Assembly: GCA_047495785.1 (NCBI GenBank)
Contig: JBLDXI010000013.1
Coordinates: 2,480,001-2,544,000 of the forward strand
Direction of reading: 5' to 3'
DNA from: Lepidodermella squamata
Taxonomy: Eukaryota; Animalia; Gastrotricha
DNA length: 64,000 nucleotides
The notes under the pieces are model-generated. The model was not told the origin of the DNA. It saw only the letters and a list, made by a program, of their open reading frames with translations, and ran no database searches. The translations under genes and the position numbers were made by a program. This document shows, piece by piece, positions 2,805 through 55,567 of this stretch; the stretch's first letter is position 1, and every line of letters begins with the position of its first letter.

Positions 2805-5501
2805 TTAATGATCGCTCGGTGGCATTCCATTAGATCTCGCCGCGGCTCTTGCTCGAGCCGACGAGGCTGTAATATTCGGCGCTGTCAGGGAACAAAGGAA
2901 GTGTTTAAACGCCGTTCCTGGGTAAATAAGTTCCCAATGCAGTTCAACAGCTGTTGACATTTGTTCGTAAAAAGCTGGTTTCGAAGCCAGGCGACGAAGG
3001 CCCCGAGGCAAGAACGTCAAGTCAGGCGCGTCATCGCCAAAATCACTCGTCGATTTGCGAGCTTCGGGCGATAGTAAATAGACCCAAGATTCGAAATCCA
3101 GCGATCCTTTCAAGACATCGGTCGTCATGCCTAGCAACTGCTCCGAGTTAGATACGCTCATAGTGCCGGTTGTAGGCCGCCGAAGTGCGAATGGTGACGT
3201 TGAAATGTAAAGCAATCGAACTGGCCGGTCTTTATCTCGACTCAGATTTTCGATCGATCGGCCGACTGGATCGCAAAATGGGCCTAAAATCTGGCAAACC
3301 GTTTCTGAACTAGGCACGTGGTCATTCAGAGCCTTTGATCGTGCAGTTGGCGTTTGTTTCTCCTCCTGAACATCACCTGTGGTCACTCGATTACGCCAGG
3401 CTTCCGGCCAATTGTGAATGTTCTCATCGACCCAGTCATCGAAACGGATCAAAGGATCGTTCGGTGTTCGATGTGTATAGGTTGAGATCTCGCCAGTTGG
3501 CGTAAGGCCAATCATGGTGATAGCTACGTCATACGAAGGGGTCGATGTTAGATAGGTCCAGGCCCGAGGAAGGGCTTTCAGATACTGACGAAGGTAGAAA
3601 AGATGGGTCTGGCTTAGCTCTGTAGGTAGTGCCGCTATTACGATAACGTGGGTTGAATCACACCGGCCGATATCTATTTAAGAAATCAAAAATAGATTTT
3701 TAATAAAGCTTTTTAAAATTCTTACTTCTATCGCATTTCGGAATAGGTTCCCATTGTCCCTGAAGGGAGCATGAAGCTGCGTCCACGTCGCGAATTTTGT
3801 AGCCATCTACACAGTCGAATTTGATGGAGTCCCCGGGGTAAGCAACTAGACTTTCAGGGTAGGCCCATTTCCTCGAAACCTCTTCGCCATTTCGAATCAC
3901 TGGTATCACATCGCAGCTAGCTAGCTCAAAAGCAGATCAAGAATTAGGGTTGATATATTTTCGGACTTTGGGAACTTACCTCCCAACGCGTCTTTCCTAG
4001 TAGTTTGTTGGATTGTAACGCACATCGGTAGGGTTGTCCAGAATCCATCGCTTTTACAGTAGACCAGCTCAGAACCGGGCGGGAAAGGCGCGTAATTCGC
4101 CCGGTCAACACATCCGTAGTAAACAGCATCACCAGTGCTGATTGACTTGGTGCCTTCGAACGATTTATGAACAACTGTTGCTCCGTTGATAGTCGGAATT
4201 TCGCCGCAGCCTTTAGTGTTTGGCTTACTCAGGACACAAATCGGCAAGTCGGCCCACGACATGTCGTCGCGGCACTGCGCGATCGCCACCGTGCTTATCG
4301 ACATCGCCATTTCGTCCTGATCGGCCAGTTGATAGCCCTCGAGGCACTCGTAGATCACCCTGTCACCCACGCGACTTTTTTCGATGAAGGTCTTAGAGCG
4401 AACGAAGGCGTTTGCGATGAGTAACGCGGGCCCACATGATGCTGGCGCGACCGTTGCTAAGGGTATGGTCACTACAGGAATCGCTCTTTGGGTAGGAATA
4501 GTCGGGTTAGTAGTCCGAATCGAAGTTTGCCTAGTCGTAGTAGGAGTCATGGTAGTCGAACCCGAAGTCGTAGGTGTTGTCCTCGTCGTTGTAGTAGTCG
4601 TAGTTGTCGTAGTTGTTGACGTAGTTGTAGTTGGCTCCTCATCCGGGGCGATTAGCGAAAAAAGAGCCGGATGTCTACCCCTTGATTGAATGAATATGTC
4701 TTTCCCCATTGTTATCTCAGCCCTTCCATCCAGATTTACAACACCGAAAAACCCTATGTAAGTCGGGAAGGTGATGGCACTTTCATATCTGAAGGGTAAA
4801 ATCAGCTCGGTAGCAGGTAATTTCCAGTTTTCGTACGCCACCCCGATAACTTGGCCAGGTTTGACCTTGAATCTGAATTTCGGCGGAATTATATAAGTGT
4901 TCCAGCCTTTTTGTTGGGTCGTTAAAACGATCGAGTAATTCGCTAGCCGGAAAGCGTAAAGGCCAATTCGATCGAAAACTACGACGAAGAAAGGCGACCC
5001 GGCTTTGTCTTGTAACTGGTTGTAGTAAGACCAGCCTGTCACTGTTCCGGCACATTCGACGCGCATAAACTCGAAAATGTGAAGTAAAGGCGACGCCTCG
5101 GGGAAATTTGTATTCAAAAAGTCGCCCGGATCGCCTGCGAAACAGCCTTCTTTGCATATCAACGGCGTTGAGTCGTACTGAAAGCTATAGGTAGCGTCAT
5201 CGCCATTCCGCCTACACCGCATTGTTTCCCAGGCATGGCCTGATGTTGAGTAGTAACCGGCTTTGCAGCTGACGTTGAGCGAAGAAAATGGGATATACCG
5301 GATGAGGGATCGGGTGTCGAGTTTCACGCCTTCGTCAAGAACTGGAGGATCACATCCGAATGGGGGTTGGTCTTGAGCTATCACAAATTCTTTAAATTAA
5401 AATAATAATTTTAATAGGAGGAATTTTAAGAAATTACCTGAGATAGCTAATGCTAGGACTAGAATCGATGTGATAAATTTAATTTCTTGCGAACATGGCA
5501 T
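2805..5501 (-). CDS. Secreted multi-domain protein: CCP/sushi, unnamed beta domain, Thr-rich mucin linker, three more CCP, degenerate VWA-like C-terminus (exons 5501-5438, 5389-3980, 3920-3726, 3673-2805)
   Basis: Signal peptide MPCSQEIKFITSILVLALAIS. CCP motifs (CGP..VGDRVIYECLEGY..CRDDMSW..LPIC; CKSDGFWTTLPMC; CSLQGQWEPIPKC). Poly-Thr at ~4500-4630. The last exon has a VWA-like strand/helix pattern (THVIVIAA, RPVRLLYISTSP) with no DxSxS MIDAS. Confidence 0.75.
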
Positions 5502-17000: not shown

Positions 17001-20000
17001 CATAGCCGCGGCTCATCCCTGTCTCTCTGGAGTAGTAGGGTGTTCATTACTCGAGTGCCAGTAATTTGTTTGAGCTGTGTAGCCTAATAAGCGAATAATC
17101 AGGCAGCGGCATTCCTGGCCCGGTGCCGGGGCTGCCGACAAAGCCGCGAGCTCGGCGGGTCCGGAGGCTCTATGTGTATGTGTGATGTCATCGAACGATC
17201 ATGAACGTGCGCCGCGTAATGGTTTAAATTGATAGCTCATCTCATCGCGATGCCGACAGACGGAGGCGCACAGGTTCTGCGCGCAACGCCGCCGGCTATA
17301 AATGCTGAATTAATTGACTAGTTACCTAGCTACCAGTGTAGTTGTTGCGCAACAACTACACGGTTCCAATAATTATAACAATCATCATCTCGTTACCTAA
17401 TCAGCGCAGGTAAATGAGCCGCTAAGCTATTATACATGCAGCCGCGGAAAAAATCGTGAAGAAATCCACCTTAAAACTTGCACGCGCGCGAGTTTGTGGT
17501 TCAACGCAAGTTCATACCTTGTCGTTGTAAAAAGTATAATAACGAGGCACGAGCGTCGTTTCAAACTAAAAGAGGCGAGGATAGGAGGATTGGAATAAAT
17601 CTTTGTTCTAGAGGCGCACCGGTCATCAAGCCGGTCACCTTACATGCTTGTAAGATCAAAGGCGCCGAGACAGCACGTTTCACACATATAATATATTTTT
17701 CAATTATTAGCTATAGAGCTAACAGCTACTGCTGTTATCATCATCAGGTCGCGGTGAATGCGGGTATGAGATTTCAAATAAACTCGGGTGTCGTATAACA
17801 GGCTTCATCCGGTGGAGCAGCAAAAGTTCACCTTTGGCCGCATCTTTGTGTATCTATTCGGCAATGCCATAAACAAATTATTGCGCGCGCGCAGAGGTTT
17901 CATTGAATTAACAGCGGGGCCAAATACCTTGAAAGCCAAGCCAAGAGCTCGTGTGATGCTGTCAAAAAGCGCTGTAGCCGACAAAGACTCGCGCGCGCGA
18001 CCCGGCAGAAAGTTTTATTGCAGGCTCGTGTCGTCGCTCGCCGCCGTGTTGATGGTCACGCGATGTCGCTGTTCCAAATTAGCATTGTCACCAGCCGAGA
18101 ATGAGTAGTAGGTATATATCGCTTTGCAAAACTTGGCAGTAAAACATTTATTTAATCGCGCGAGTTTTAATTGAAATGTTTCCACCATAATATTGTGTAA
18201 AAACCAAAGGCTAATATTTGGTCAAACTTGAGAAATGAAAACAATAAAATTTAATTGAACTCTTCATTGAAAAAAAGTAAAATAAAGAGACGTGATGAAA
18301 AATGAAGTCAAATAAAGCGCCAAGTGTTTGTGTTATTATTCACTCAAGATTATTTGTTCTTAAAAAGTTCGAAGCGATTCCGCGGATTAAGCGCGTTGTT
18401 CGGACATATATAAGGTGATAACTCGATGCACTGAGTGTATGTTTTTTTTTTATGGGCGCTGCAATAAATCAATGTAGCAAATGTAAAGAATTGCCGTTAT
18501 TGCTTGAGTTATGTGTGTTGGAAGTTGGGAAATAATTCTATTATTATTTACCAAGCAAGCGTGTTAATGCGATAATATGACTGAACTCGGTGATCTGTGG
18601 GCCGAGAGGGAGGAGCGATCGCCTTCTTGTTACAAGTATCCGGGCAGTTTAAACAGTTGCGTGTTGCGCAAGTTCGGCCACGCGCCTAGCCGCAGGACGT
18701 TGCACGCGACCCGGAATTGCCAGCTCAACGCGAAACAAGCTAATTCGGGCGAAGAAATCAAATCATTACAATTGATTTCTTGGCGCGCGGCGTACGGCCA
18801 GGTAGACGGCGCCGGTCAGGTATAATCTGTCTGCGCAGATTAGACACGCGGATTACTTATTATATAGTGGCCGTCGAGTGTGAACATGATTGATTATTGC
18901 CACTCCTTTTACAACAATAATAATAATAATATAATGCAGTACCTTGGCGGTTCACAGCTGCCAAGACCAACACGTGGCCGAAACTGACCAGAACAGATGT
19001 TTATTCGGGACTGAGAAATTGAAAAATAACATGAACGGCGAACAAAATGACGGCACGATGTACATAATTTTTCGATTCGTTAAACACGAAAAATTGGCCA
19101 TATGACAAATTTGAGACGGATGAGAGACTTAGCTGACTAATTATAGCCTCCCTTATAAGATTTCACAAGGGAAAATCGGCACTGTCTTTTGAAAACTGTG
19201 ACGAATCCCATAAATCCCAAGAATTGCGAGAAATTCATAGTTTCCCTTGCTAAAAATGCCCGATAATTCGAGCAATCGCAAATAATGAGATCTCTTGCAC
19301 CTGCTAGCCGCTGTTGATAAAGCAAAATTATCCGTTAGAAAACAAAGTGGCCATTAGCGGGAAAATGGATAAAAATAATCGTTTATTTACTCGCTTGTTT
19401 ACGCCTTGAAATGCGAAAATGGAGAGCAAAAAATCAACACGACGATCTGTTCTGTTCGGAACATTTTCACTTCGCGCGGACCCAAAAGCTGCTATTTGTC
19501 TTTTGCGGCCATTGATCAGTGACGGCGCATCGCCGGCAGGCGCGTCCGCCGATCTTCGAGGCGCGTCGTCTATTTACGATATATAGCATATCTCGTCATA
19601 TTCAGCATCTTCAAATCAACACTTGGCGTAGCGAGTGTGCTTGATTAACACTTCGTTTTCAGCTGTGCATTTGCCAAAGTAACAAACCACAATCTAATTA
19701 TCAGCCGTCAATTGGCTACTGCGCGGCTAGGCGGCCGCCGTCGTCGCGCGTGTCTCGGCTGCATTTTGGCCTCTATTATATGCGTTTAAGGGGCCGTGTC
19801 GGATGCGATTGCCGAGCCTGGAGATTTTAAGAGTCGATCGTTATTGCTAATAAATTCTGGCGATGAGCCGGCTGTCTCCGCGTAGGGGCATCGTATCACT
19901 CACTGTCGTCGCAGTTTTATGACATATAATATTGTATTTCAAGTGCTCGGACTTGAAAAGGGCGAGTATGGTGGTACTGGCCGACGGTCGTTTGACGATC

Positions 20001-20430
20001 ACGCGCTTCCTCTCCCGCGCCGTGTCAAGCACTGGCTCGCCAGTGTGACCTCCGGTCAGCCGGCAGTGCGGCCAACGCGCATCTCATTTGACTTTCCGAC
20101 GGCGTGGATTAATTACAGCTATCGTAAAAATCGTGACAATAATTTGGCGAGACGGCGCCAGGGCGTCAGTAAGGCGAGACACAGTGTGAAGAGTCAAGGG
20201 CGCTTGTGTTACTTTTAATTTATTGTTGTTTATTATTAAAATTTAGCGCTATATTAAGACGCAGCGGCGCACCGTTCCGTGCAGATTTATGTTTGTAGAA
20301 GGCGATGAAAGACAATGATTGATGCGCGTCGACGCTCGGCCGTGTCTTCAGGGAGATGAGACGGTCGAGCGTCCTTTATCTAGCGTTAATAACTGATAAT
20401 TAGATTGCACTCATTTAGCATACGCATTGA
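11077..20430. promoter_or_regulatory. 9.3 kb non-coding upstream/regulatory domain of robo
   Basis: No credible ORF or spliced CDS. About 7 times longer than the divergent gaps elsewhere in the window (0.7-1.4 kb), and 5' of a neurodevelopmental gene. Confidence 0.55.
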
Positions 20431-20795
20431 CAGCGTTCGATTGACCGCCGACATGTTACTTACTGCGATATGGCAAAACATCCTGCTTCATAACATTGAG
20501 CCTAGAACCTAATGTAATGGTTATCTCGGCATTTGCAAGGAATCTGCCCGGTTTCAACGAGTTAACCCCGCGTGATCAGCAAAAGCTGTTCGCCTTCTCC
20601 TATTTCTCAATCTTGTTGCGGTTTTAGAATATGAGTACGCTCAGCAAGATGAACCTAAATACATCAGTGCCTTCGCTCTGAACGAAGTTCGTCCGCTATA
20701 AATTTTCCAGGCAAGGTTCCAAGCCATAGCCGCTTTGACGCAGGAAAAAATTTCGGAAACCGGTGCTAAATTGAGCCACTGGGGCCTGTCGTCTA
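20431..20795 (+). pseudogene. Dead copy of part of the nuclear receptor ligand-binding domain (donor 50877-51235)
   Basis: Direct alignment within the window: ~19 substitutions, a 7-nt insertion (GAACCTA), a 1-nt deletion and a CAA>TAA stop. Confidence 0.95.
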
Positions 20796-20806
20796 CTTGT
20801 AAGGAA

Positions 20807-21193
20807 TATACGTTGATTGCATCAACGGCTTGAATAAAAGATTTTACTCCTGGGGACATCCATTAGTGTTTTCACTACGAAGTGCATTAGCGTCTCGTGT
20901 TTGTCTAAAGCCAGGTTAAGACTTGAATAACAAACGGCGCTTCAACTCCATTTTGACAGCGTTCCGATCTACATTCCCGCGCTGCAACAAGCTGAAGTTC
21001 TCCTGAGCCCTCCTCGCCAGAAAAGGCAACGCAGCCGACAGCGTGCCATACGCAACAGATTGATACACAAAGTAGCCGTGACTTGCCAACCATTCCGATA
21101 TGTAGTCCGTAAACCCCCAAGTTTGGCCGAACATTGCCACATCGGGGCGTTCGCGATACATCTTTTCACGCATATTCAACGCTTGGCTTATAG
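20807..21193 (-). pseudogene. Copy of the proline dehydrogenase 3' end and 3' UTR (donor 51721-52107)
   Basis: 387 nt colinear, gap-free match with ~10 substitutions, all in the coding part. 5'-truncated and fused to unrelated sequence at 21194. Confidence 0.95.
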
Positions 21194-22620
21194 CCAGGCA
21201 GGCAGAACAATTCATACGGCCGGTTCGGCGATCTTTCGTCGAGATCACGCACTAATGCGATCGTGTCACAGTAGCGCCAGCTTGCAACATAGGTCGACAA
21301 CGTGTTAGCGACTCGCAATTCTGAATCGGCGAGCGAGTAGCCGAACCGATCGGCCGCTTGGTAGACAAAACGCGAGTAACTACCGTGCGCAGTCCTAGAT
21401 CCACAGCCACCCACATTTCCGCAGTCGGATCTGAAAATAAAACAAGAATCCCGTATCAAAAAAGAAATTGAAAGCAATATAGCTACTGAAAGGTGCTTGT
21501 TGAAAAAAATGCTTCTCGTTGTTAATTAGTTCATTATAGAATAATTATTTTGCCTTTTAATTAGTTTCGTCATCATACCTATTACGTATACCCTGTGGCA
21601 AGCTGATGACGAACTTTCGTCATGTTGACACCCGAAGTCAACCAAGTGCCGGATCCTGATTGAAGGCTTGGCACTGTAATAGCGCCAGGCCAAGGCAGGT
21701 CGAACGATGTCTGCGGATTTGTCGGAGCTGTCCAACCGGGCGGTGCGCCGTATTCATCGGCTGATACGAAGCTGAACGCGCAGCTTATCCAGTTGGGAGG
21801 CTGATAGAAGCCGAGTACGTCTCCTGCGATCACATTCAAGCCATTCGTTCCGTTGAATTCCCTGTTTTTGAATAGAATAGATGCCGCTTCTACTTCTCTA
21901 TAATGTATTCACTTATACAAGGTGAGTTTTCGGAACGATTGAGAATACGAGTGAATGCGGAACGGAACAACGCCAGCTCAGGGTATCGTCGGAAATATTC
22001 CGAAAATTCTGCAGGAAGTATGACCGATCCAAGTCTGGATAGTTCGCCCGTCGCTGAGACTGAATAACTCGTAAAATAACTTCCCATTGAATGAGAGTTC
22101 CTGTAAAATTTGACGGAGGGACCGACCCAACCATTCCAGCCGTAGCCGCTGTCACATCTTGTATGTCATGACTTGGCATTTCTGAGGGCAGAGGATTTGG
22201 TTGGCCAACAACGCAGACCTGCCCGGTCGCACCACCAGTAGCATCTAGTGCCGAGAATACACCATCTGTTACAACTGCTCGAGATTTGCCGAGGCGGCGA
22301 ATGCATTGGAGAGAACGACGTTCCTTTTCAAGGCCCAGCTTTTGCTGGGAGAATTGTAAGCTGAAACCTGGCATATCTCCATCGGCACATTTTTCTGGCG
22401 AGTTAAGACGGACCAGGCTTTGAATTCGGAAGAGCTGATAGCCGAATCGGTTGACGATCAGCTGCTTCAGACGGAGACAGTAGGGTGTAAGCGATCAGTG
22501 GATTAGACGCTGCATCGACAACATTGTTTACAGGTTTGTCACCAAGTGTCACATTGATTGCAGGAAATTGCGAATCGAAGCGGTCGACTTGGCATCCAAA
22601 CAGATAGAATCGGAATGCGA
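21194..22620 (-). pseudogene. Intron-containing fragment of a discoidin-end/CCP/beta-domain extracellular gene, distant relative of the gene at 2805-5501
   Basis: Exon pieces with GT-AG junctions (e.g. GYT|SDCGN at 21586/21430). IAFRFYLFGC resembles the end of an F5/8 type C domain. TGTLIQWEV and LNVIAGDVLGFY parallel AGTVTGWSY and VKPGQVIGVAY in the 2805-5501 gene. Frame breaks near 22490 and 21915; no start or stop. Confidence 0.65.
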
Positions 22621-22622
22621 TG

Positions 22623-22883
22623 AGACGAAACGGACGAAAAATCAAAATCTTTAGCTTTAGTCGAAGAGTTGCGACCGATTTTCAAGCATCTGGAATTTTT
22701 CGGTATTTATTTACCCTCAATTTTTTCTCATTCGAACAATCGTGATAGTTCATGGAAGAAAATAATATTGACCTGAGCAAATTAGCATGGTCTTGCGACT
22801 GTTTCATGATCGTCGTCAGAGGTGACTTACTGCCTGATAAAGCGGCTCAAAACTTCACCCATTTTCTGCCAAACGCTTCCGCC
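22623..22883 (+). pseudogene. Copy of the exon 3-intron-exon 4 segment of the FMN-reductase-like gene (donor 34804-35074)
   Basis: Direct alignment (IDLSKLAWSCDCFMIVVRGDLLPDKAAQNFTHFLPN vs IDMSKLAWSCDCFMIIVRGD...). The intron is retained, so the copy is DNA-level. There is a 6-nt CTTTAG duplication and the acceptor is deleted. Confidence 0.93.
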
Positions 22884-22967
22884 CTCTCGCATATCAGGCG
22901 AGCACAGCACGTTGACCATCGACTTGCTTTGCGTCTTATTGTTGCTATCATGATCGTAGTTGAAATA

Positions 22968-24353
22968 CTGTAAACGTATTAATTTTCGCGGTATTTTTGA
23001 ATTCGCGGACGGCCCATTTTCGGTCATTTTTCATTTTCGCGGATTCTTGAATTCGCGGACTCAACTTTGGAAAAATTACCATTTTCGCGCTCAATTATTT
23101 TCGCGGACGTGTAATTTTCGCGGTGATATGAATTCGCGCAATTGCCGCCTCGGTGATTCGCAGAGCCGCAGCGCACGCAAATGAACAGGTGCGCTCGTCG
23201 ACCAAACAATAAAGCCTATTACGCACATTTGCGAGTGCGCGTCCAGGGCGGCGGTTGTCTTGATCGCAGTGTTCCTACCTACCTAAGCGCGATCTTTGAT
23301 GGGCACCCTGTGAATCGGGAGCATGCCGTTAGAATTTTATTGGCCCACCCCATGTCCAATTGGAAGCGGCGCGCAGGTGGCTACAGCGCACGCTGAATTT
23401 GTCTAAAATGTTTTAAAAACTCCCGTGTCACTCGCGCGCAAAATTTGATTGAATAGAAGCTCAAAAATCCGTAAAAAATGCTTCACTTTTTAACTTATGG
23501 TGCAAATTATATGAACAACTCAAGTTTTCGACGGTGAGGAATTCCTAGGAACAAATTAGATATTTGGATTCAGCGTGAAAAGTTGAGCTACACGGCAAAT
23601 ATACGCGCGCCTATGATCAAAATTAGGGAAGAAATAGGGGTATTAAATCATCCGTTGTGCTCGCGCGCGTGTTTGTGTGCGTCTGTTGATGACGCGCGCG
23701 CAAGACCTTCAACAGGCAGAGCGCGGCACATGCGCTGTTTTTAAGCGCGCGCGCTCATACAGTTAAACGTTTCTTCCGCATTTCTTCATCATTTTGAAAG
23801 AAAAAAGTGCAAAAATTGGCGACATTTCAACACAAAATGTCACGCTGAATCAAAATATCTAATTTGTTTATTGAAATTCATCGCCGTCGAAAACTTTATA
23901 TTGCCTGCTCCAGTCAAATTTGCGTTTTTGATAATTATTTCATCACACGGGCGCGCACCGATTCGCCTATGAAAACTGAGACTAAAATCGTGTAATATTA
24001 ATGCTATTCGAATTTTTTTGCTGCTTTCAAATTGTCGGTAATACTTACATGCCGAGTACTGTTAAACGACGTTCGTTATTCAAATTTTGTGTAGAACTGA
24101 TGAAGATGAAAGTAAGTAGGTAAAAAAACAGCGAAGCGATTTCCTAAAAAAACACACTTTCACTTGTGGGTCAATTTGACAAAGTAATTATGGCGCGCCC
24201 TAATTTTCACGAAAACATTTCTTTCACGCGCCTTAATTTCCGCGAAAATAATTTTTCACGCGGACTAATTTTCGCGGTTTTTAAATTCGCGGCCGGAGAA
24301 AATCCGCGAAATCCGCGAAAATTAATACTATGCGAAAAATAATACGTTTACAG
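22968..24353. mobile_element. Non-autonomous Tc1/mariner-type DNA transposon (MITE-like), 1386 bp
   Basis: 22-bp TIRs CTGTAAACGTATTA(A/T)TTTTCGC with 1 mismatch. TA duplication at 22966-67 and 24354-55. Many subterminal TTTTCGCGG/CCGCGAAAA motifs. No transposase ORF. Confidence 0.92.
23522..23896. repeat. Internal 56-bp inverted repeat pair (23522-23577 / 23841-23896) within the MITE
   Basis: 49/56 identity after reverse-complementing (AAGTTTTCGACGG..ACAAATTAGATATTT..ATTCAGCGTG). Confidence 0.85.
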
Positions 24354-25412
24354 TAATTTGGCTTCGAGTAACAGCTAGGCCCAAATAAATGGTCGTAGCT
24401 CTCTTCGGGCCGGCAGCCACAGGTCACCTTGTCCTTTTCCGCTGGATTACGATCGATAGGGTTAAGGTCGTCTATAAAGGATAGAAGGGAAATTTCTTAA
24501 AATTCGAGAATGATTGAAAGGTTACGGTAAATAAACAATTGACGGGTTCCTTTAGCTTGCATCACTTCGACAACCTTTTCCGGCCGAACTGGTTGCCATT
24601 GATTGGGATCTTCTCTTGAAGCTAGTAAATCCGCATGACTGTAGGGACGACTAGATTAAAGAAAAAACTCTTGAAAGTCAGAAATTTTTTTGGATCCTGT
24701 TGTCTATTCTAAAACCCCATTATAGAAGAATAGGATAACATTTCAAAAGCTTTACCCTTTATCTAGAAAGGTGTTCTGGAAAATTCCTTCATCACGCTGC
24801 CAGTCGTGCATCCTGCCGTAAGAAGTTCTGAAAAATGGGTCCGCCTTAACATTATGACGATCTTAGAGCTTCCGGTGTAACGAACCTGCTTTCCTTTCGC
24901 CGGCCATTTGGGTCACGCCGATAGGAATAAACATTTGTTTTATAGTCCATAGCCATTTTGAGCTTGATAATTCGCGAAAATCTAGCCAAAAAGTATCGTC
25001 CAATACACCACACCTTGTAACCTCAGCTCTTTGAGACGCCTCAGCGTTTTTGCACCCTTTCAGTCTGATATGAATGCGATGAAGAAAAATCAATCTTGTA
25101 CGCTATGTTATTTTTGCTCCCAGAAAATCACCGCATTTTTTTTCACAGAGGCAACTGGGCACCAATCAACATAAAAACGATACTATACCGCTCGTAGCAT
25201 AAAAGACGACATGATTTAATGCGCCAATCGAACGGATATACGTTCGCGACTTGCGCTCAAGTCATAATTTGTTCAGGCGATATGGAAACCCAGACAATTG
25301 GACACCGCTATTTTATTCGCAATTTTTTTTACAATAATTATCATTTAAATTCGCTTCACAAAAATCACTAGAAATTCAAACGTGAGAACAGAGTGTCAAT
25401 CGGACTAGATTT

Positions 25413-26669
25413 TCAACTCGGCGGCTTTTCCATGGTGAAAAGCGACCCGAAAACGATGTGTTGAACAATAGGGAATTTGGCTAGCACCTCGCCTCGATAC
25501 ATTTTAATAAGACCCTGGTTCGCCTTAGCCCAGTTCGGCACCCCAGATATATTCCATAGCTGGTTTGAATGTTCGGCGAACGGGCCGGTTTTCACCTGTG
25601 TGATGTATCTGATCGCGCTCAGAAACAAATAATCGGCATAATGACGGTCGTAAATGCTTGGTTCTGGGAAATTCGATGGTAGAATTGACGTGTGGTCCTG
25701 AAGTTGAGATGCACCCCATAAGAAGGGCAAAAATTGGTAGTCATCCAAACACCAAACACCATGACTACCCGCGGGTTCCATTCTGAAAATTGAAAAAAAT
25801 TAAAATTTAATTTAAATTAAAAAAAAATTCGAAAAAGAAGATTCCAGGCTTCTGACATTATTTAAAAAATTCCAAAATACCGTATTTTTTGTTACCATAG
25901 CAGCCCGGCCTACTCAAATTTCAACCTCAAAATTTTGCAAATTTCAAAAAATAATTTTTGGTGAATAGTTCATTTTTGACGTTTTCGAACCGACTTGACC
26001 CCTCAACCCTGGGCTACTATTAGTGGATGGGCTACTATTGGAACAAATACGGTGTACCGATAATTCATTTTTTATTTACCTGTATGTTACTTGAAGTTTT
26101 CGGCACATCTGTAAATACTGGTCGAAAGCTTGAAGGAGAAACGCAGTGCCATCGGTATCGTTTAAAAACCCGATTTTATAGAGGATCAAGCCGAAAATGA
26201 CGAAATTTAGCTCATGCCCAGTGCCATAGTCGATTCTAGTCGAATTTCCGAAGGCATCGAGCAGATAGGGCTTTAGTTCGACTTTCGCCCGGCGAAAGCC
26301 GCCTCCTTCCGGCAACATTTTGTCGAGTAATTCGTCGCAATTTTCCGACATTTTCTTGAACCATTCACGGTACGCCTGATTACCGAATCGCGCTGGCTGT
26401 TGAATTGGCGGAGTTTCGTCGATTAACCGGCTCAAACTGTCGATTAGAGCTAGGATCGATTTAATATTATCGCTAATTTGGTAATCTTTCGTTGATGAAA
26501 TCGCTTTGTTACACACGCAATCGTTGAGCCATAGCATGAATTTAATAAGATCGGCATAAGCAGGCGATTGCTCCCATTTTCGCATGTCCATTGGCTTCAA
26601 AACCGCGCGTTTCGGCTCGACGAACTCGTGCGTTTCTGGGTTTACTCGTTCTAGCTGTGGTGAAGTCAT
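25413..26669 (-). CDS. PTPA: Serine/threonine-protein phosphatase 2A activator (exons 26669-26080, 25782-25413)
   Basis: RFGNQAYR, FGNSTRIDYGTGHE, YR|MEPAGSHGVWCLDDYQFLPFLWG, KTGPFAEHS motifs. Confidence 0.96.
25880..26052. mobile_element. Short MITE (~173 bp) in the PTPA intron
   Basis: Imperfect TIRs TA|CCGTATTT..TTACCATAGCAGCCC / GGGCTACTATTGGAACAAATACGG|TG, and a duplicated GGGCTACTATT subterminal motif. Confidence 0.72.
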
Positions 26670-26852
26670 TTTAATATATAAAAAATCGACTATTTGAAAA
26701 GAAACCGTTGTTATTCATCTCACAATCACTTTACTATTACGTCGAGTACAAAAGCGTCTGAATGTCCGTAGAAATCAAACATAATAGGCAAGTGGAAGAC
26801 ATTGAAAAATTGCATGCGATTATTATTTTATTTGTAATTATTATATATTTGA

Positions 26853-27811
26853 TTATCGGAATCGATGAGTCGTATGATCGCGGAAATATTGATGCTCGAG
26901 CGCAGCTTTATCAGTTATCCGACTCGCCGGGTTGAGAATTAACATTTTCTGCAGCAAATCTCGACCGTTTGCTGATAGACGCGGTACGACGTGGCTTAAA
27001 GACGAAGCACCTGATGTCACGCCTAACGAAGCCGAAGTTGATATTGGCCGGTAATCGGGTAAAGATGTCACACCAGGCCATGATTCTTCGCTTGGCCAGC
27101 CTGAAATGGGAGTGAAAAGTTATTTAATATACCTCCGCCTTGAAAATTACTACCTAATAATTTGAAAATTTTCTTCAATTGATCGTCCGCATCTGTACCA
27201 GGGAACAAAGGTCTGCCACCATTGGCCAACTCAGCGAAAATACAACCAGCCGACCAGGCGTCTACCGCAGTATCGTATTGACGAGATCCGAAGAGAATTT
27301 CAGGGGCGCGGTACCATAATGTAACTACTTCGCATGAAAATGACCGAACAGGAATGCCAAAAGCACGAGCTAATCCAAAGTCGGCCAAGCGGAGCTCGCC
27401 ATTACGAGTTAGAAGTAGGTTTTGAGGCTTCAAATCGCGGTGGAGTACATGCTTTCTGTGGCAATATTCAATGCCGCTCAGCAACTGATGAAATAAGTTT
27501 CGCACCAAATTTTGATCGATTTCTCCGTTGCAGCTCTCGAAAAAGCGCTTCAGATCTTGATCACAGTATTCAAAGACTAGAGTGAGAATCTTCTCGCTGT
27601 GAAGAACGTCGATTAAGCGTACAATGTTGGGGTGACGCAGCTCCTTTAAAAGAGCGATCTCTCGCAAGGCTGAACTCGGAACGCCTTCGTCTTCCAAGTC
27701 CAAGCGCACACGTTTCAAAGCGACGATCTCCTGAGTTTGCCGATTTTTCGCTTTGAAGACCATGCCATACGTACCTTCGCCAATTTTCTCAATTTTTTCA
27801 TATTTTTCCAT
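26853..27811 (-). CDS. CDK5: Cyclin-dependent kinase 5 (exons 27811-27154, 27100-26853)
   Basis: [34 protein letters not shown]; splice KLLG|[10 protein letters not shown]. Confidence 0.96.
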
Positions 27812-27909
27812 CGAAATGAATAATAATTATCTATGAAGTCCATGAATATGATGATGAGATAAATTTAATGAAAAACTCATATGAGCGAGATAAAAATCTG
27901 GGACAACAC

Positions 27910-28308
27910 CTATTCTTTCTCTTCAGGCTTAGCGCCGGTGGGAGGGCGATCGATGGTGTTCTCATCGAATGCTTTTCTGGCTTTTTTCAACTCGTCATTC
28001 ATTAAAAGAAGCTCTTTGACGCGTGAGAACTTGCGTTCATCTTTGCGAATGAGAAAAATAATATCTTCAACCATGACTCGGCCAGCTTTGCTAACATCAA
28101 CAGCTCGTTTAGTCATATCGATTACGTACTCGATTGCCAGATGTTCCAGCAGATCTACTGTGTCTTGGTATGGATTGTCTTCATCGCCGAATCCGAACAG
28201 CATGAAGCGAATTTCTTTAGCAAAAATACCGGCTTGAATAGTTGAATGAGTTACTTGATCATCATCGTCAAGTAACTCCTCTTCGCCAACGCCGACATAG
28301 GATGCCAT
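27910..28308 (-). CDS. TAF13: TFIID subunit 13 (single exon)
   Basis: IFAKEIRFMLFGFGDEDNPY..TVDLLE..VEDIIFLIRKDERKFSRVKELLLMNDELKKARKAFDE. Confidence 0.95.
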   Translation of the reverse strand: MASYVGVGEEELLDDDDQVTHSTIQAGIFAKEIRFMLFGFGDEDNPYQDTVDLLEHLAIEYVIDMTKRAVDVSKAGRVMVEDIIFLIRKDERKFSRVKELLLMNDELKKARKAFDENTIDRPPTGAKPEEKE

Positions 28309-29665
28309 GTTTTATAAAGAATTTTTACTTACGGAGACTTCTAGAAGAAGAAGAAAATGCGAGTGATCTAGCAAACGTTCAGGTTGTTTTCTGTTTGCAA
28401 CAACGTTACACAAATATATGAATTCGAATAGATTTGATCGCCGATCAACGAGAACACAGAATCAACAAGTCTTGACAGCAAAGAGCCAACATGTTGGTCT
28501 AAGTCAACCAATTGAGGATAGATTTACCAGCAAACGGAGCGTGAGGTAAATGCCTTATGCCATAGGCCTTCTGTCCTCCGTTCTCGCAGAATAATCAAAC
28601 AGGACGACTGCGATGTAAATAGGAAATGGGTAAACTGTAGCCAGCCTTTCTCGCAGTAATTACAAAAACTCAAAGAATATCTCACTTTCATTTCCAAGCG
28701 TCATCAGCCTGTTAGATGAACTGGGAATGATGCGAAAGTGGTGGGTATAAAGGCACAGCAGTTAGCAGTTCTAGAAATTGTAATGTGCCCCTAGCTTTGA
28801 TTTTTGGTGAGTATAACTCTGCGGTTCCTGTATGCTGCATGCAGGAAGCAGACACACAGCTTGACCAGCCAAGCAGCCAAAACAGCCGAGAGCCAACAGC
28901 CGAGAAGATGAAGGTTACACTTGATTAGTTAACACTTCATTCTTTGTTTATCACGCATATTAACTTTTAGTTCAGAGGACGAGAGATATAGTTCTCAAGA
29001 AAATTTTCCAATATATATTATCGAGAAATATTGCTTTGAATTGTCATAAAATGAGCAATCCGTAAAAAATCTTGGCAGTCGGTACAGACGAGTTCACCGT
29101 TTATGGTGCTATGATTCAAAGCAGTAACGGTGAAATCATACTCTCGAATCTTGCATTACGCTGAGACTTTTGTCTTGTTTGATTTGTTACTCCGATACTT
29201 GTTTTCTTCACGAAGAACTAGACGAAGCAACAGCCATCGACGTATTGAATGCATTTTGAATCCACTTGTTCTTAGAACTAGTAAATAGCTCAGTTTTTCT
29301 TGGCAACCGCATCTCGGATCTATTGGTTCCTTCTATTAGCTGCACCAGTTGAAGAAATAGCGTCGAAGGGGAGAACGGAAGACGTCTCTTGACCTTTCAT
29401 CCTGTGCCACCTCCAGTCCTCGAAGAGTTATCTGTACATTTTTATGTCTACATCATGAGTAATTTGGGCTGCATTTTTCTTTCATTTTCTGATTATAGTA
29501 TGAATTGAATAGCTGCTTATTTCTACACTCTAGACCTAACTAACGCATAGGTGTGGTAGTTATAACAGGCTTATGTCGTAGTTTAGAGCTTGAAAATATG
29601 ATTTTGTGGCTTTCCTTTTTTCATACATTGTAACTCTCCGTATTTTACTAGGCTTTTATTTCTGA

Positions 29666-31032
29666 ATGGTTGCTATGAACAGCTGGGAGAAGCTGCGAGC
29701 TGCTCAGCATGATGCGTGGGCTTTGGTTGATACTGCTGTTACTGAGGATGAGAAAGCAACTGGTAGCGAGAAACGACGTGCGTTGCCATTCTATAAGTCT
29801 GGTTTAGAAGCCTTAAATGTTGCGATAAAAATTGATACTAGCGGTATCACTGATGAAGCAACTAAAGAGAGGGCCAACCGTTTGCGCCAGAAAATCGAAA
29901 AGAACATAGATTACGTCAGGGAGCGTATTCGCTTAATTGAGACACTCCCACCTCTAACAACAACTCATCGCAGCGCTCGACCTACGTCAACTTTGTCATC
30001 CCGGACGACCGCTAAAACTGCTGCTCCCTCGAAAACTGACAAAGGCGACGCAAAACTTACCCTTAAAAATGTCGACAAGGCTTTAGCCGAAGCTATCTTA
30101 TCTGAAATAGTCACTCCCGCTGGCAAAGGCCCAACTTTCGATGACGTAATTGGCGTTGAAGAGTGCAAAGAAGCTCTGAACGAAGCAGTGATATTACCAG
30201 CTGTGCGACCTGATCTCTTCACAGGATCCCGCGTTCCACCTAAGTAATAATTCAACTATTAATATCTAACACGATTGTAAACTTTGCACTGATTTGCAGA
30301 GGTGTTTTACTGTATGGACCTCCTGGTAATGGGAAAACGTTGTTAGCTAAAGCGGTTGCTAATCAAGCGAATGCTACGTTTTTCTCCATCACCGCATCAA
30401 CCCTCATATCGAAATGGATGGGCGAGAGCGAAAAGCTGGTTCGAGCTCTGTTCACAGCAGCTCGCGAGCTTCAACCATCTGTCATTTTTCTTGACGAATG
30501 TGATTCTATCCTCACCGAACGCAAAAGTGGTGACAACGACTCTATTCGTCGCGTGAAGACCCAATTTCTCGTCGAATGTGACGGTCTCTCAACCGGTGAA
30601 AATGAGCGTGTTGTATTGCTAGCAGCTACAAACAGACCTTGGGATTTGGATACTGCAGCTTTGCGTCGGTTACCTCGTCGAATTTACCTACCACTACCAG
30701 ATGCCAAATGCCGAGCTGCAATCCTCACTAGCTGGTATGAGAAAAACAAGCAACAAGCCAGTTTGTCTCCCAGTGAAATCGAAGAGCTAGCCGATAAAAT
30801 GGAAGGTTACTCGGCTGCTGATATGACTCAATTATTTCAAAACGCTGCATTAGCTCCACTCCGCGAGCTCAGTATTGAAGTTCAGAAAACTATCGACCGC
30901 AAAGACATTCGCCCAATTAATGCCAACGATATTTGTGCTTCGATGCGAAAAATTCGCCCATCAGCTTCCGACCCGGCTGCTCTTCGCGAATTCGAGAAAT
31001 GGACAGCTGAATTCGGCTCATCGGGTCTTTAA
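29666..31032 (+). CDS. SPAST: Spastin (MIT + AAA microtubule-severing ATPase; exons 29666-30243, 30300-31032)
   Basis: MIT domain, LKNVDKALAEAILSEI, EAVILPAVRPDLFTG, Walker A GPPGNGKT across the splice, SKWMGESEKLVRALF, ATNRPWDLD. Confidence 0.88.
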
Positions 31033-31198
31033 TTAGCAAATTAAAAAACCGGTGCATTATTGATACTTTGCTTCTTCGTATTTTAATGTGATTTTCGCTC
31101 GTTTAATCAAGGATTTTGAAACAATTGATTTCATTTTTTAACTGCTTTTTCTATAATAGGCATGATCTTATTAAATCTGTAGATTTATTCGTGGTTCA

Positions 31199-33484
31199 AT
31201 GGCGCGGAAAGACGTTCCAATGGGCAAGCCCGGGCAACAAAAACGCGGAAATTCGAGTGGTAAAAACGTTGATGAAAAAGATGCGGCGAACAAGAAAGGC
31301 AGCCCATCTTCATCTTCGAAATCCACCCCTCAACTGCGGCGATCTGGGCGCAATTCTTCAAATAGCAATAAAAGCGACTCTTATTTGTCTTCGGATCCGA
31401 ACTTCGCGGCATTCAAAGAGCGCCTTGTTGCTATCGGCCTCGAACTTCGCGATATAATTGGCGATGGGTTTGTGGTTTTAATTTTTTTCTAGCAATTTGA
31501 ACGCAATTTTGTGGTATTTAGGAATTGTTTATTCCGAGCTCTCGGTGACCAGCTCGATGGCAGCGACTGTGATCATTTGAAACATCGCGAGGATGTTGTC
31601 CGGTACATGATAAAACACGAAAATGATTTCTCCCCTTTCGTCGAAGACGATGTGCCATTCTCAAAACACAGTGCGTTGAACTCATTTGTCGCCTTAATTT
31701 TGTTTAATGATTTTTTTCTTGCAGTCGACGAACTTCGCCAACCTGGTACATTTGCTGGCAATGACGCGATTGTAGCGTTCGCCCGGTTGCACAAAGTAAC
31801 AATCATAATTCACCAGCTCGACGCGCCGGCGATTGAAATTAAAGGCGCAGATGAGTCGGCCCGCCAGTTGCACATCTCATACCACAACGGCGATCACTAT
31901 TCGTCGGTGCGGCGCATCAACGACTCGACTAACAAACCAGTCAACATTCGGCTGACTCCCATTGTTGGCAGCAACTCTCAAAATAATAATCATAATAATA
32001 ACAATAATAACAAAGACCATCGATCTTCATCGTCTGCCTCAAATTCGTCGAATCACAGTGGGAAAACGCAATCGTCTACGCCGAATACTAGCGGCTTCTC
32101 CGACCTAGCGGCGATTAATGAAATTATCGAGCGGACCGGCTGTGATGACGTTGAACTCGTGAAATCGTCGCTGGCCGATAACGAAAATGACGTAGCGGCG
32201 ACGATTGACTCGGTTATGGCGATTCTTACCGTGACTCGCGCCGACTCGGCCGCGTCCTCTATAGACGGCGCCGGCAGTGACGGTGAACTGGGCTCGAGTC
32301 AAAACAGCAATTCGGCTAAATCTTCTGCTAAAGGACGGGTGAGTCGCATTATTTCAAATAATTAGAAGCCAGGGTAGTATAACTTAGTGCACCTCAAATC
32401 TGAACATGACCCTCTTTGATTTTGATTTCGAGTCGACATGTTTTGAACAAAAGACATCTATGTTGAACCGGGATTTTTCATTCAATTGCTCTACTCAGGA
32501 TAGGGTTCCTCTATTTGTTTATTTGCACTTTAGAAGCCTTGGAAGCTACAAAATTAGTTAAACTTGTAACATATCTAAGAAATGTTGGGCAACAAAATTT
32601 TTCAAATAAAAACTCAAATTATTCAAATTCAAATAAAAAATGCGGAGGTTTCTTGAAATTTTTCATTGGATGCTAAAATCATGGCCTAATTAGAACCCTG
32701 AGCTAGCTGATTAATCAAGTGGGAACTCTTATAATATGAGCTCTCAAGATCCAGTATCGAAATTGGCTCAACGTGAATTCGTCTTAAACTTCCGGTTATG
32801 GTCGAACATTCACGTAGGTAACCCTACATTTGGGCTCCAGGACAAATATGATTTTTCGAGTTTCAGTTCTCCTTTTTTATTTCCAAGCCAAATCGATAAA
32901 TCTCACTATAAAACTCATCGATAAAACGTTATGAGGATTGTTTTACGTAGCCTACAGAATTTTTATCGATTTCTCAAGTCAGTGATTTTTCCAATATCAG
33001 GAGCCTTGGAAGCCAACATTGAAAATGTTTCTACCCAGCTGATGATACAAAGTCCGACTGTCATGGAAGGCATCACTAGCGATAAGTAAAATTTAGCTGG
33101 ATACTAAATTTCAGTAGTGCGTATGCCAAGACCCATTCCTAAATTTGGCCTGAAATTTGGCTGAACCGCAACCCCTAATTCTGAAAAGAGGCTTATGGCA
33201 TGGGCATATTCATTGTAAAGATGACTAACCAGAGTATGTCCTGAGTTGTGGGAAAATCATCATTTTTCAATGCTTTTATTTATGTTTTCTACTTTTGTTT
33301 ATAGTCTCAACAAGCGAGGGCGAAGAAGGTGGAGAAAAAAATTCGGCGAATGCAAGAGCGTCGCGAGCAGTACCTAACGTCGAAAGGCCCCGTGGACGAG
33401 TCGTCGCGGCGCAGCCAGCAGCCGTCGCCGTCGTCCGATGTCGTAATAATAAACTCGGCGAAATTAGACATTGTCTCAGTATAG
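31199..33484 (+). CDS. OTUD3: OTU deubiquitinase 3 (exons ~31199-31467, 31521-31670, 31725-32338, 33305-33484)
   Basis: GDG|[53 protein letters not shown]-like IIERTGCDD, basic C-terminal exon. Confidence 0.92.
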
Positions 33485-34235
33485 CAAAACATTGCGAACT
33501 TATGTAATAGTATCATTATGTACCATTTATTTGCAATCTTTTATCACAAGATGTCTGTTTCTTTCTGGAAAAAAATGTCTTGAAAATCCTGTTTTCTGCA
33601 TCAGTCTTACGGTTTGTTTTTCTTCATCTCTCTCTACTTATAAATATTAAAAAAAAACGATGCCTTTCTCTTGCTATAAAAATATTAATTTAGCAAGAAA
33701 TTATCATTAATTTAGTTTTTTATTGGTAAAATATAACTAAAAAAATGACTTTTATTTGTTGCTTGAGAGAATTCGATACGAGGTGAATCTAAACGGATTA
33801 TTTTTGTGTTCAACTACTATGAAGTATGAACAGGTGAGAAAGAGACCCCTTTGAATTGAATGAAAGTCGAAAAAACGCATTTTGAACCAAATAAAAAATA
33901 TTTTCGCAATTATCAATTGTTTTTTCTATAAAAAAATTCGGTGCTTCAAAGCCACTAATAATAATGCGGTGGAAAATGTGAGCAAATTACTAAAGCTGGT
34001 TTGTTTACTCAGGACACACCGGTCCGAGAATTATTTTATGCCGTAAAAACGTGCCCGGAAATGTCCATCGACTAATCGCCGGCGAGATTTTGCATGAAAT
34101 TTACGTGGTTTTAATCGATTGCGAGGCCTGAGTTCAGCCCACCGATGCGATGGTACAGAGAATCAGAGTGGAGTCAGTAAACACCAAATGAGTAACTGAG
34201 CAACTTTTTAATTTTTTAAGTTCGTGGTACTAGAA

Positions 34236-35363
34236 ATGGGAGGCGTCTGGTGAGTAGCTCGTTGATATTTTAGCCACCCTAATATTTTTTGTTCAGCCCA
34301 TTTTGCCCGGCCAGGCGTATCGAGCCGATGGATGCCGATACTTCACAGGTGGTCGTGCGTTTCAACGACGTTCCAACCTTTTACAGCCCAGTGGTCGATA
34401 CGGCTGTTCAGACTGATTTGCCGTCACCCTGGGCGACCGATGTGAGGCGGAATAGAACAGATCACGACACACCGTCTGTAGCTCCGATGACGTCAATTGT
34501 AAACGAATCTCCGTTCAATACTACGAATTCTCAGCTGGAAAGTCTCACAGAACTTGATATTCAGAACAACCCAATGATGATTACTAGGCGGTCGCTATAT
34601 CACAAGTCGTTCAACACGCCAGAATTTGAGGAGGAAATACATTTGTGAGTGCACTGTATCGATTTATAAATTATTGTAACTTCGTTATTTCCTTCCTATA
34701 ATTTTTGTCTGATGTGAATTTTCTTAAATTTTCTTAAAATAATTTACAGGAGAGATATTCCTTCTCGCGTCGATGATATCAATATTACCCTCGGTATATT
34801 GTTAGACGAAACAGACGACAAATCAAAATCTTTAGTTGAGGAGCTGCGACCCATTTTCAAGCATTTGGAATTTTTCGGTAGTTATTTTTTACCCTTATTT
34901 TTTACTATTCAAACAATTACGGTTACAGAATCGAAGCTTCCGATGGAAGGCAACAATATCGACATGAGCAAGTTAGCGTGGTCTTGCGACTGTTTCATGA
35001 TCATCGTCAGAGGTGACTTACTGCCTGATAAAGCGGCTCAAAACTTCACCCATTTTCTGCCAAACGGTTCCGCCGAGGCGAAAAACAATCCATTCTACGC
35101 CAAACCAACAGCTATTGCATGCGAAGGTACACTTCTATTTATCATCAGTGAAAAAATTAAGGTGGCGTTTTCATCTTTTTATTTTAGAAATTTCATTGGT
35201 CTCGGATCTTCGTAATTTTTTGAATTCGATCGGTGCTGTCGTGATGCCTTCGGTTTTAACCACAACCGCCAATATGCCGGCAAGTGAGAGCAAGGCGGTG
35301 AATGAGCTCAAATTATACGCAACAGCCCTCAAACTCATCAAATTGAGTACTCTGACTGTGTAA
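34236..35363 (+). CDS. Probably N-myristoylated protein with a degenerate NADPH-dependent FMN reductase (flavodoxin-like) domain (5 exons)
   Basis: Hand-spliced: MGGVC|PFCPARRIEP...EEIHL|RDIP...LAWSCDCFMIIV...PFYAKPTAIACE|EISLVSDLRNFLNSIGAVVMPS...ELKLYATALK. The C-terminal half follows the FMN_red pattern, recognised from memory only. Confidence 0.65.
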
Positions 35364-40666: not shown

Positions 40667-41396
40667 GAAAACTTCCTTCAAATGTTTCCAATTATACTAC
40701 GCAATAAATAATAAACAAAGATATCAAAGAACTGAGAATTTCTGACAGCTAGTTCGTCGAAATGAACAGAAAAGAAACTAGAAACCTCATCGGCGGCAAC
40801 TGAAAAATAAAATTGGAACATTTCCGGCTCGACGCTCGAATTAAACCAAGCACCGAAGAGAAGCGACTGCTTTCGTCCGATTGATTTATAAGAGCCAGAA
40901 GGGATAGCCGATTCAACACGTCGAACGGTTCGATTAACATAAGGTCTAAAAGCAATCAGCCTTCGCTCTTTTCATCATCTCAGCTGACACCCTTTTTGTT
41001 TCGGACTCTCTCTCGCGTCTGTCTTTTTTTGCGCCAATAAGCTCAATCAAAATAGGTTTTGACCGTAAAATAAAATGATTTCAATGATCAATGAGTTCAT
41101 TCCATGGAAATGCTTTTTACAGACAATGAGCTAAATCCCGAAAAAATCTGGCCTTAATGGCGGGCTAGAAGGAGCGCGTGGCAAAAATGCGGAAGAAATC
41201 GCCGGTCACGAGCCCCTCGGCACGCTTGCCTTTCGTCAGTGATTTGAGCTCGCTCTCGCTTTGAGCTTTGATCTGTTTTCTGACAAGCAGCGATCGATGC
41301 AACGACTTTTTTATTACCTGTTATATTATTCTTGTCGCATCTTATATTAATAACTCTCTACTCTCTTTCTGTCCCGTAGAATTTGCTGAGAAGGAA

Positions 41397-43166: not shown

Positions 43167-43297
43167 TTTATGCATTGACAATCCATGTCTGGCTGTGCCT
43201 TTCAGACTTGTACTAACTTATTTTTCTTGGTGTTGTCTTTATGGAGAAAAGCAACTAAATTAGTTTGATTTTATATTCTTAATTTTTCATTATAGGA

Positions 43298-45622: not shown

Positions 45623-45925
45623 AAGCTCGCAGTGCAGTTTATTGTGTAACTACTAGTTTCATTACATGCGCGAAGACGATGCTTCATGAAAAACTTTTTT
45701 CCCGTCGATGAGCGCTTTTATGCTATTATGGTGAATATTCGGTTGGTGTCTGAATGTGTTATTATTATTATTATGTTCCGGGTTGTGCTCTAACGCATGC
45801 TTTATCTTGTCGATTGCCAAAAATTTTCGTTTGTGAAACAAACTAAACTGCTGTGACAACAATGAAACGAAAAATTTGAGTTGTGGAATTTCAAGGAGGA
45901 TTTTTCATTTCATAGTGCGTTAAAA

Positions 45926-51540: not shown

Positions 51541-51829
51541 AGAATTAGCATCCGCTCGGCGCACTCATTATAATATGCTCGTTGCCAATTGCAAATGTGC
51601 TATTCTTACGTGTTTAAGGGTCCTTTATTTATGCAAAATAACTGTTCCTCTCATCCCTTTGTTCTCATAGACTCATATAGACATGCTTCGCGCGTCTGCT
51701 TGTGCTTTTCGGGAATCTGTTATACGTTGATTGCATCAACGGCTTGAATAAAAGATTTTACTCCTGGGGACATCCATTAGTGTTTTCACTACGAAGTGCA
51801 TTAGCGTCTCGTGTTTGTCTAAAGCCAGG

Positions 51830-53640: not shown

Positions 53641-54395
53641 TTTCCCCGCAAACAAATGAAGTCCTAAATTGTTATTTCAACTCTCACCTTCAATTCAGCC
53701 GCAACTCACGCTATCATTTTACGTTTCGGGAGAAGTAAGCAGACCGTGAAGCTGTTTTCCCGCTGAAATTTATGCACTGGTTTGGTTGTAATTTTTAGCT
53801 TTTTGGTCTCGGGAGGCCCATCTCAATGCCTGTCAAAAACGTTAATCAGGCCACCTGAACCAGCAACAAAAGGCTCGTCCCTTTTGGGACTTCACCTCCA
53901 TCCAACAATAGCCCGATATTGCGATAGATTTGTTTCCTTTATTCTCGCTTTTTCTTATAAAAATGATGGCGCATTTTAATACAGGTTACCTTTTTTCATC
54001 TCACAAAAGCCAGGCACAATAGAAACAATAATGGTCAGTATATTATGCGAAAAACAAACCGCCTTGGCCCTCGCGAGTGCACCTTGTTGGCGTTAAAAAT
54101 ATGCAATAATAATACAGTAAAAACGTTAAAGCATAACTTTATACGAGAGAGGCTGCAAAATGGAAATACGCACGTTTAGAGAGATTGCAAATACATAGAT
54201 GAAGTAGGTCAAACGGCAAAGACTTAAAGCAAACAATGACAACAGTTTAAAAGTAACACCTGAACGTTTCTCACAATCAAATATTACGCACGGGTTCAAA
54301 TTGTAACTGGAGTGTGGAAGCTGCAGTAATAAAAATAATACGCCGCTAAAATATTTAAACTTCTCAAACAAAATAACGCGATTGTCTTCATAGAT

Positions 54396-55366: not shown

Positions 55367-55567
55367 TCCAGTAATAAGAGATCTAAACAATTAAAAGCGC
55401 AAATGTTTGAAGGCAAGAAATAATTCATTTGATGAATACATATAAATAAAATAATAAAACCAGCAAATATTAGTCTAAACAAATCAAAACTCGAGAATCG
55501 ATAGCGTCTTGGTCCAACCACAGCAATTATTCTCAAATAAATTTACTCGCTAAAATAAATTCGATTC

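Follow-up and report, generated by a model that had tools for sequence, protein, structure and literature searches.

Junctions assembled from templated insertions are familiar from cancer and from human disease, with a few examples described at primate and fly breakpoints. At gibbon synteny breakpoints, Girirajan et al. in 2009 reportedly found mosaic new insertions, including a patchwork that interrupts a gene at an evolutionary break. Here we describe a mosaic of gene fragments at positions 20431-24956 of a window of 64,000 nucleotides (nt) from the gastrotrich Lepidodermella squamata (positions 2,480,001-2,544,000 of contig JBLDXI010000013.1, assembly GCA_047495785.1; coordinates below count from the start of this whole stretch). 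We read it, with a probability of about 0.5, as a single chain of templated insertions, formed where a rearrangement broke a gene that we call X, dead on arrival and copied from templates that were already ~10% diverged at silent sites. Unlike in the gibbon mosaics, every piece here derives from a gene, and an expressed copy elsewhere stands in for the gene that was broken. No report of a templated-insertion junction in a gastrotrich was found in the literature searched, and the unusual features of this locus are its diverged templates and the relocation of X.

Chains of templated insertions and local-distant clusters were defined by Li et al. 2020 (PMC7025897). The L. squamata mosaic resembles these chains in its strung copied segments, its use of local and distant templates, its intact donors and, apparently, its failure to return to the point of departure. 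It differs in being germline and present on both haplotypes, in having testable pieces that are all direct, and in a divergence of 3-17% with a synonymous excess; that it arose in a single event is, here, inferred. With respect to fork stalling and template switching (FoSTeS) and break-induced replication mediated by microhomology (MMBIR), the joins carry short inserted bases (fillers of 11, 3 and 4 nt), and long homology is absent from them. Copying from a diverged homologue has also been proposed for some Drosophila inversions (PMC6861252, PMC7584159).

The L. squamata genome comprises 122.8 Mb in 157 contigs at 43.3% GC, with a heterozygosity of 2.99%, 66% of k-mers common to both haplotypes and 2.8% duplicated BUSCOs; the sample was one animal, amplified by multiple displacement amplification (MDA) and sequenced beside C. 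elegans (PMC11660948). We located repeats by comparing the window with itself and took junction evidence from contigs, not reads, of one DNA run of 2024 and one run of 2015 that is probably RNA. The DNA run, with a haploid depth of ~48 and a diploid depth of ~100, probably represents the source sample of the assembly, one MDA-amplified animal. Results from run contigs refer to the contig pieces listed, beside which 266 further pieces exist. Exons were joined only for reading frames; searches with spliced models took one exon at a time or used the genomic reading frames. Freshwater metagenome contigs from ENA (L001-L010 and L068-L074, 5-37 kb, PTPA 63% identical), which are animal and probably from another gastrotrich, served as a distant synteny outgroup. 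No close outgroup for polarising changes was found: a PRODH scan was blank, the best PTPA match reached 69% and the best protein relatives 32-70%.

Self-comparison revealed three long repeats in the window, each with one copy in 20431-22883 and all direct. The pieces of the mosaic and their donors are as follows.

20431-20795, plus strand: piece a, a dead copy of part of a nuclear-receptor (NR) ligand-binding domain, matching 50877-51235 at 92.6%
20796-20806, no strand: 11-nt filler between a and b, standing in for the 485 nt that separate their donors
20807-21193, minus strand: piece b, the PRODH 3' end with 112 nt of 3' non-coding sequence, matching 51721-52107 at 97.4%
21194-21196: 3-nt filler between b and c
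21197-22622 (right end approximate), minus strand: piece c, the decayed internal part of a multi-exon gene of a multi-copy family, with a discoidin/F-lectin-like motif
22623-22883, plus strand: piece d, an internal part of gene D, matching 34804-35074 at 82.7% with its intron included (22703-22748)
22884-22887: 4-nt filler between d and e
22888-22965, minus strand: piece e, gene X, the final part of exon 4 still present, with the cut at 22888
24354-24956, minus strand: gene X exons 24886-24956, 24756-24827, 24526-24650 and 24354-24471, the frame open across them
34804-35074, plus strand: donor of d, in intact gene D, with an intron at 34878-34928
50877-51235, plus strand: donor of a, in an intact, expressed NR
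51721-52107, minus strand: donor of b, in an intact, expressed PRODH

The inserted segments are extra copies, as the donors of a, b and d are intact in the window and RNA contigs match the NR and PRODH donors, sharing their letter differences. Piece a carries one stop and two indels, an insertion of 7 bp and a deletion of 1 bp, neither of which occurs in the contigs of the second haplotype. For the 11-nt filler, no full-length template was found in the window. Piece c, which has an intron at ~21433-21591, has no donor in the window; an expressed relative, 5-12% diverged, is present among the run contigs. A sushi gene at 3921-5384 was considered as its donor and rejected by the window comparison. 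Pfam placed the donors of a and b as nuclear receptor and proline dehydrogenase, and Pfam and Atlas found a family for none of c, D and X.

These results partly bear out a sequence-only reading of the locus, which had matched a, b and d to their donors in the same orientation, noted the filler in place of 485 nt and found c to lack a donor in the window. Its NR and PRODH labels stood, while FMN_red-like for D and discoidin/CCP for c reflect motif resemblance and drew no support from Pfam or Atlas. It had described five fragments lying end to end; instead, a transposable element of 1386 bp with a second inside it lies within e. It had taken e for a truncated gene of four exons; e begins at 22888 rather than after that element, and it is native rather than copied.

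The mosaic is real, occupies a single locus and is present on both haplotypes. Its pieces are contiguous in the assembly, and the left junction and the b-c joint are also seen in DNA-run contigs. The left junction occurs there in two different versions, and a contig of 10.6 kb that enters piece a from the left flank has other letters at 20429-20430. Stretches at 21837-22200 (364 bp) and 22625-22821 (197 bp) have exact matches at a depth of 98-108. Two versions of the mosaic together with single-locus depth are as expected for two haplotypes. Among the contig pieces listed, none outside the assembly spans the a-b or c-d joint and none spans the whole block. In the c-d junction area the summed depth reaches 989 at 22649, though the exact d sequence is single-locus, and some high-copy contig matches a short stretch in 22600-22660 at 80% or more.

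The two haplotypes have since changed in different ways, through two miniature inverted-repeat transposable elements (MITEs) and two deletions.

22968-24353: MITE of 1386 bp with terminal inverted repeats, in exon 4 of X, with a TA duplication at 22966-22967 and 24354-24355
23522-23896: second, high-copy MITE nested in the first, with 64-nt arms that are 84% complementary
20888-21325: deletion of 438 bp in the second haplotype, removing the b-c junction, its joint at depth 50
24519-25202: deletion of 684 bp in the second version of the locus, removing X exons 1-3 and leaving a 1-nt filler, its joint at depth 83

The empty site of the first MITE is found in DNA and RNA contigs, the joint that skips 22966-24353 having a depth of 83. 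None of the RNA contigs listed crosses a mosaic junction. They end or leave the mosaic near the junctions, with loose ends at 20431, 20795, 20807 and 22888 and a contig for c that aligns only from 21197. A three-letter variant at 20746-20750 occurs in neither the mosaic nor the window donor (DNA depth 77; RNA depth 3.8 versus 16 for the donor), and it may reflect the other allele of the donor or a low level of transcription from the second haplotype of the mosaic. The block is most likely inert, and no function is indicated.

The order of the mosaic, NR-PRODH-C-D-X (C being the source gene of piece c), is not collinear with that of the donors, X<D<NR<PRODH: D follows PRODH in the mosaic and precedes NR among the donors. 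The block is therefore not a simple collapsed duplicate. In addition, window self-comparison found no trace of VPS15, FPGT, OST48 or glycogenin left in the mosaic. Under the templated-insertion reading, a break would have fallen in exon 4 of X and repair synthesis would have switched template several times, copying ~270 nt from gene D at a distance of 12 kb, ~1.4 kb from gene C at another place, and ~390 nt from PRODH and ~360 nt from the NR at 27-30 kb, before joining the upstream region of Robo. All pieces would have died together ~1-2.5% of neutral divergence ago, and the templates would have been alleles, or a haplotype, ~10% diverged at silent sites from the present donors. Loss of X at this site would have been tolerated because a second X existed already or arose in the same event. 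One haplotype would afterwards have gained the MITE, and the other would have lost the 438 and 684 bp.

Closer inspection of gene X placed one end of this junction. In the metagenomic relative, OTU-spastin-TAF13-CDK5-PTPA-X (L001, 141-6870) keeps the order and strands of window positions 24956-33500, and its X is 46-49% identical to e in amino acids. That X directly follows PTPA in a distant relative identifies e as a native gene at its ancestral position. The conservation from OTU to X fits a suggested operon, in which case X at its new site must have acquired another promoter or another partner upstream. RNA joints confirm the three introns of X, whose frame is open up to the cut at 22888; the expressed X transcript continues past the cut for 235 nt or more of other sequence. 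The missing 3' end was not found in the window (best match 19/30), nor to the left of piece a. Expressed X differs from e at 15 of 348 letters, and at 9 of 125 in exon 3 (4-7% diverged). The DNA run contains three versions of X, namely that of the window, one without exons 1-3 and one with the letters of the RNA and a different intron 2, which implies a second X locus if the run derives from one diploid animal.

The mosaic is bordered on its left by 9 kb of sequence upstream of Robo, whereas in the relative homeobox genes follow X. A cluster of divergent homeodomain reading frames was observed there ~5 kb downstream of X (L005, 9086-11517). On the donor side, the order FPGT-OST48-glycogenin-NR-Ig-FN3 (window 41268-56209) is kept in the relative (L007, 688-11065); the NR donor still has glycogenin and the Ig gene as neighbours, its ancestral slot, but its strand is reversed, and the outgroup slot has no PRODH. 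Walks in the outgroup found no orthologues of PRODH, D or C, and the Robo contigs end within ~4 kb upstream of the large exon.

We next consider the selective history of the copied sequences. Codon counts gave 13 synonymous and 6 non-synonymous changes for a, exactly as the sequence-only reading had counted, 11 and 5 for d, which it had called mostly synonymous, and 5 and 5 for b, with none in its 112 non-coding positions. Together a, b and d hold 29 synonymous and 16 non-synonymous changes, with a proportion of synonymous differences (pS) of 0.13-0.16, of non-synonymous differences (pN) of 0.024-0.026, and a dN/dS of 0.15-0.20. Partial lists of differences give 7 and 1 for c and 3 and 1 for e. 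A dead copy of an identical template was rejected (P 0.0001-0.002), so the claim that the copied sequences diverged mostly under purifying selection holds. A diverged-allele template also leads one to expect such selection: where the template is the other allele, the functional phase is that allele's own history, and a functional duplicate is not required. With a donor dN/dS of 0-0.1, a two-phase solution gives a functional silent divergence of ~8-14% and a dead time of 1-2.5%.

Non-synonymous divergence was uniform over a, b and d (0.022-0.031, heterogeneity P=0.89, at the low power of 16 changes), as for one death date. Silent divergence was patchy (pS 0.07-0.25, heterogeneity P 0.08-0.10), as for alleles of different age; d carries 14 changes in its first 125 coding nt versus 2 in its last 95 (P=0.016), and the untranslated region (UTR) of b has 0/112 changes versus ~7/43 in the intron of d (P=1e-4). 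Old junctions that were dead on arrival were considered and rejected, as b would then hold ~27 changes at 7% per lineage and carries 10. Coalescent simulation of ordinary polymorphism returned P values of 0.001-0.03 at 3% silent diversity, 0.02-0.14 at 5% and 0.13-0.34 at 8%. Ancestral polymorphism, which the earlier reading had left out, can thus account for much of the synonymous excess if silent diversity is 5-8%. Polarising the changes, as that reading proposed, would not separate a duplicate from a diverged template because both predict a synonymous excess on both branches.

Several points weigh against a chain of templated insertions, and some of them favour its principal rival. No microhomology could be shown at the junctions with known donors, where later deletions may have erased it. 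Polymorphism suffices for the silent excess only at a silent diversity of at least 5-8%, which is plausible given the 3% genome-wide heterozygosity, and silent divergence in patches of d and, by rough estimate, of c reaches ~30-35%. The outgroup is too remote for dating either the break or the adjacency to Robo. The remaining points would equally suit once-functional duplicates collapsed by deletion: a and b are collinear with a 485-nt gap and could be joined by a plain deletion, gene conversion of an old duplicate would also yield patchiness, and large deletions are now eroding the block, the 438- and 684-bp losses on the second haplotype showing attrition to be a real process here. In such a history, a block of at least 30 kb would have undergone duplication, either in tandem or by way of a circular intermediate, both copies would have worked for ~10% silent divergence, reciprocal loss would have kept X and C in one copy and PTPA to PRODH in the other, and deletions with at least one more rearrangement would have joined the stumps. 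As in tandem duplication with random loss or duplication through extrachromosomal circular DNA (PMC7188851), orientation is direct and the history is one of purifying selection, the silent excess being strong in all five pieces; reciprocal loss would explain X and C elsewhere, and NR-PRODH-C-D would be a circular permutation if C lies to the right of the window. Unlike such cases, the order cannot come from one duplication. A single tandem duplication was rejected on this conflict, since it cannot give both the left-hand order NR<PRODH<C<D and the right-hand order D<NR<PRODH, and at least three events are needed. All five genes would also have to die within ~1-2% divergence, the intervening genes left no remnants, a second PTPA copy is not evident and duplicated BUSCOs are few. 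We consider collapse somewhat unlikely. The sequence-only reading had proposed it as a duplicate of the surrounding neighbourhood, a view weakly supported given the order, the traceless intervening genes and a native e with a working copy elsewhere; the better fit is its alternative, in which synthesis switched serially between templates on a diverged haplotype.

Other routes to such a mosaic account for less. Repeated inversions with staggered breaks that re-used one breakpoint, each leaving a short duplicated stub and possibly drawing on the other arrangement in a heterozygote, appear improbable. The dead duplicates and fillers are short, as at staggered breaks and in the heterokaryotype and BIR/MMBIR models with possible copying from a diverged homologue (PMC1885836, PMC6861252, PMC7584159), the stub sizes are like those of Drosophila, which have a median of 321 bp and reach 1.9 kb (PMC1885836), a heterokaryotype origin would supply diverged templates (PMC6861252), and the NR is flipped relative to the outgroup. 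Staggered-break duplicates are inverted, however, whereas a, b and d all lie in direct orientation; a single junction here joins four pieces drawn from three places, and the uniform non-synonymous divergence speaks for one date rather than a series. That a gene-capturing transposon (Helitron, Pack-MULE or Pack-TIR) carried the block into X is quite improbable. Like such captures, the block is a row of fragments of several source genes, 0.3-1.4 kb long with introns kept; unlike them, its specific stretches are single-copy, at a depth of 98-108 versus ~48 haploid, and no terminal repeats or target duplication were found bracketing 20431-22887. None of the CTRR motifs close to the left boundary sits in an A/T target, the hairpin being judged by eye, both MITEs are later insertions with an empty site, and beyond the block the 3' end of X was not found. 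Flanking by NR-PRODH in the manner of a target-site duplication was also rejected, the right copy being whole. Finally, an artefact of whole-genome amplification or assembly is highly improbable. The source genome was likely MDA-amplified, MDA makes chimeras by local template switching (PMC11660948), the sole DNA run is probably of the same sample and no listed contig covers the whole block. A chimera would nevertheless be an exact copy on one version, and here the pieces are 3-17% diverged with stops and frameshifts, the left junction has two versions, haplotype-specific deletions appear at haploid depth and the exact 364- and 197-bp matches at diploid depth. Depth and joints in the run contigs accordingly reveal neither the assembly chimera nor the multi-copy Helitron or Pack-MULE that the sequence-only reading had named as alternatives.

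A broader account, which we hold to be unlikely, would make the block the fossil of a lost haplotype. Two gene sets ~10-30% apart at silent sites, from a cryptic-species hybrid or long-isolated arrangements, would have coexisted, and one repair event would have copied the alleles of five genes from the set later lost and moved the last gene of the conserved cluster to a different location.

Three further observations concern the surrounding genes. In single-copy DNA upstream of Robo, a 15-bp perfect inverted repeat with TAATTA lies at 19690-19704 and 20393-20407, 688 nt apart; these are possibly paired homeodomain sites, or chance. One RNA contig extends 347 nt to the left of the b-homologous stretch (51374-51830), and if it is contiguous, the PRODH 3' UTR and the 3' coding end of the NR, which is convergent with it, overlap. 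The long open reading frame of the NR passes through a 57-nt in-frame GT-AG stretch at 50017-50073, in the zinc-finger region, which is probably an intron.

Collectively, the locus presents a probable repair scar fixed in a compact invertebrate genome, datable to ~1-2.5% divergence and still eroding by deletions of 0.4-0.7 kb. It carries the warning that, in a highly polymorphic species, a low dN/dS between a pseudogene and its parent is no proof that the copy was ever functional. The pieces most likely preserve older versions of the genes than the working copies of today and, were the lost-haplotype account true, such scars would make a vanished parental genome readable from a single animal.

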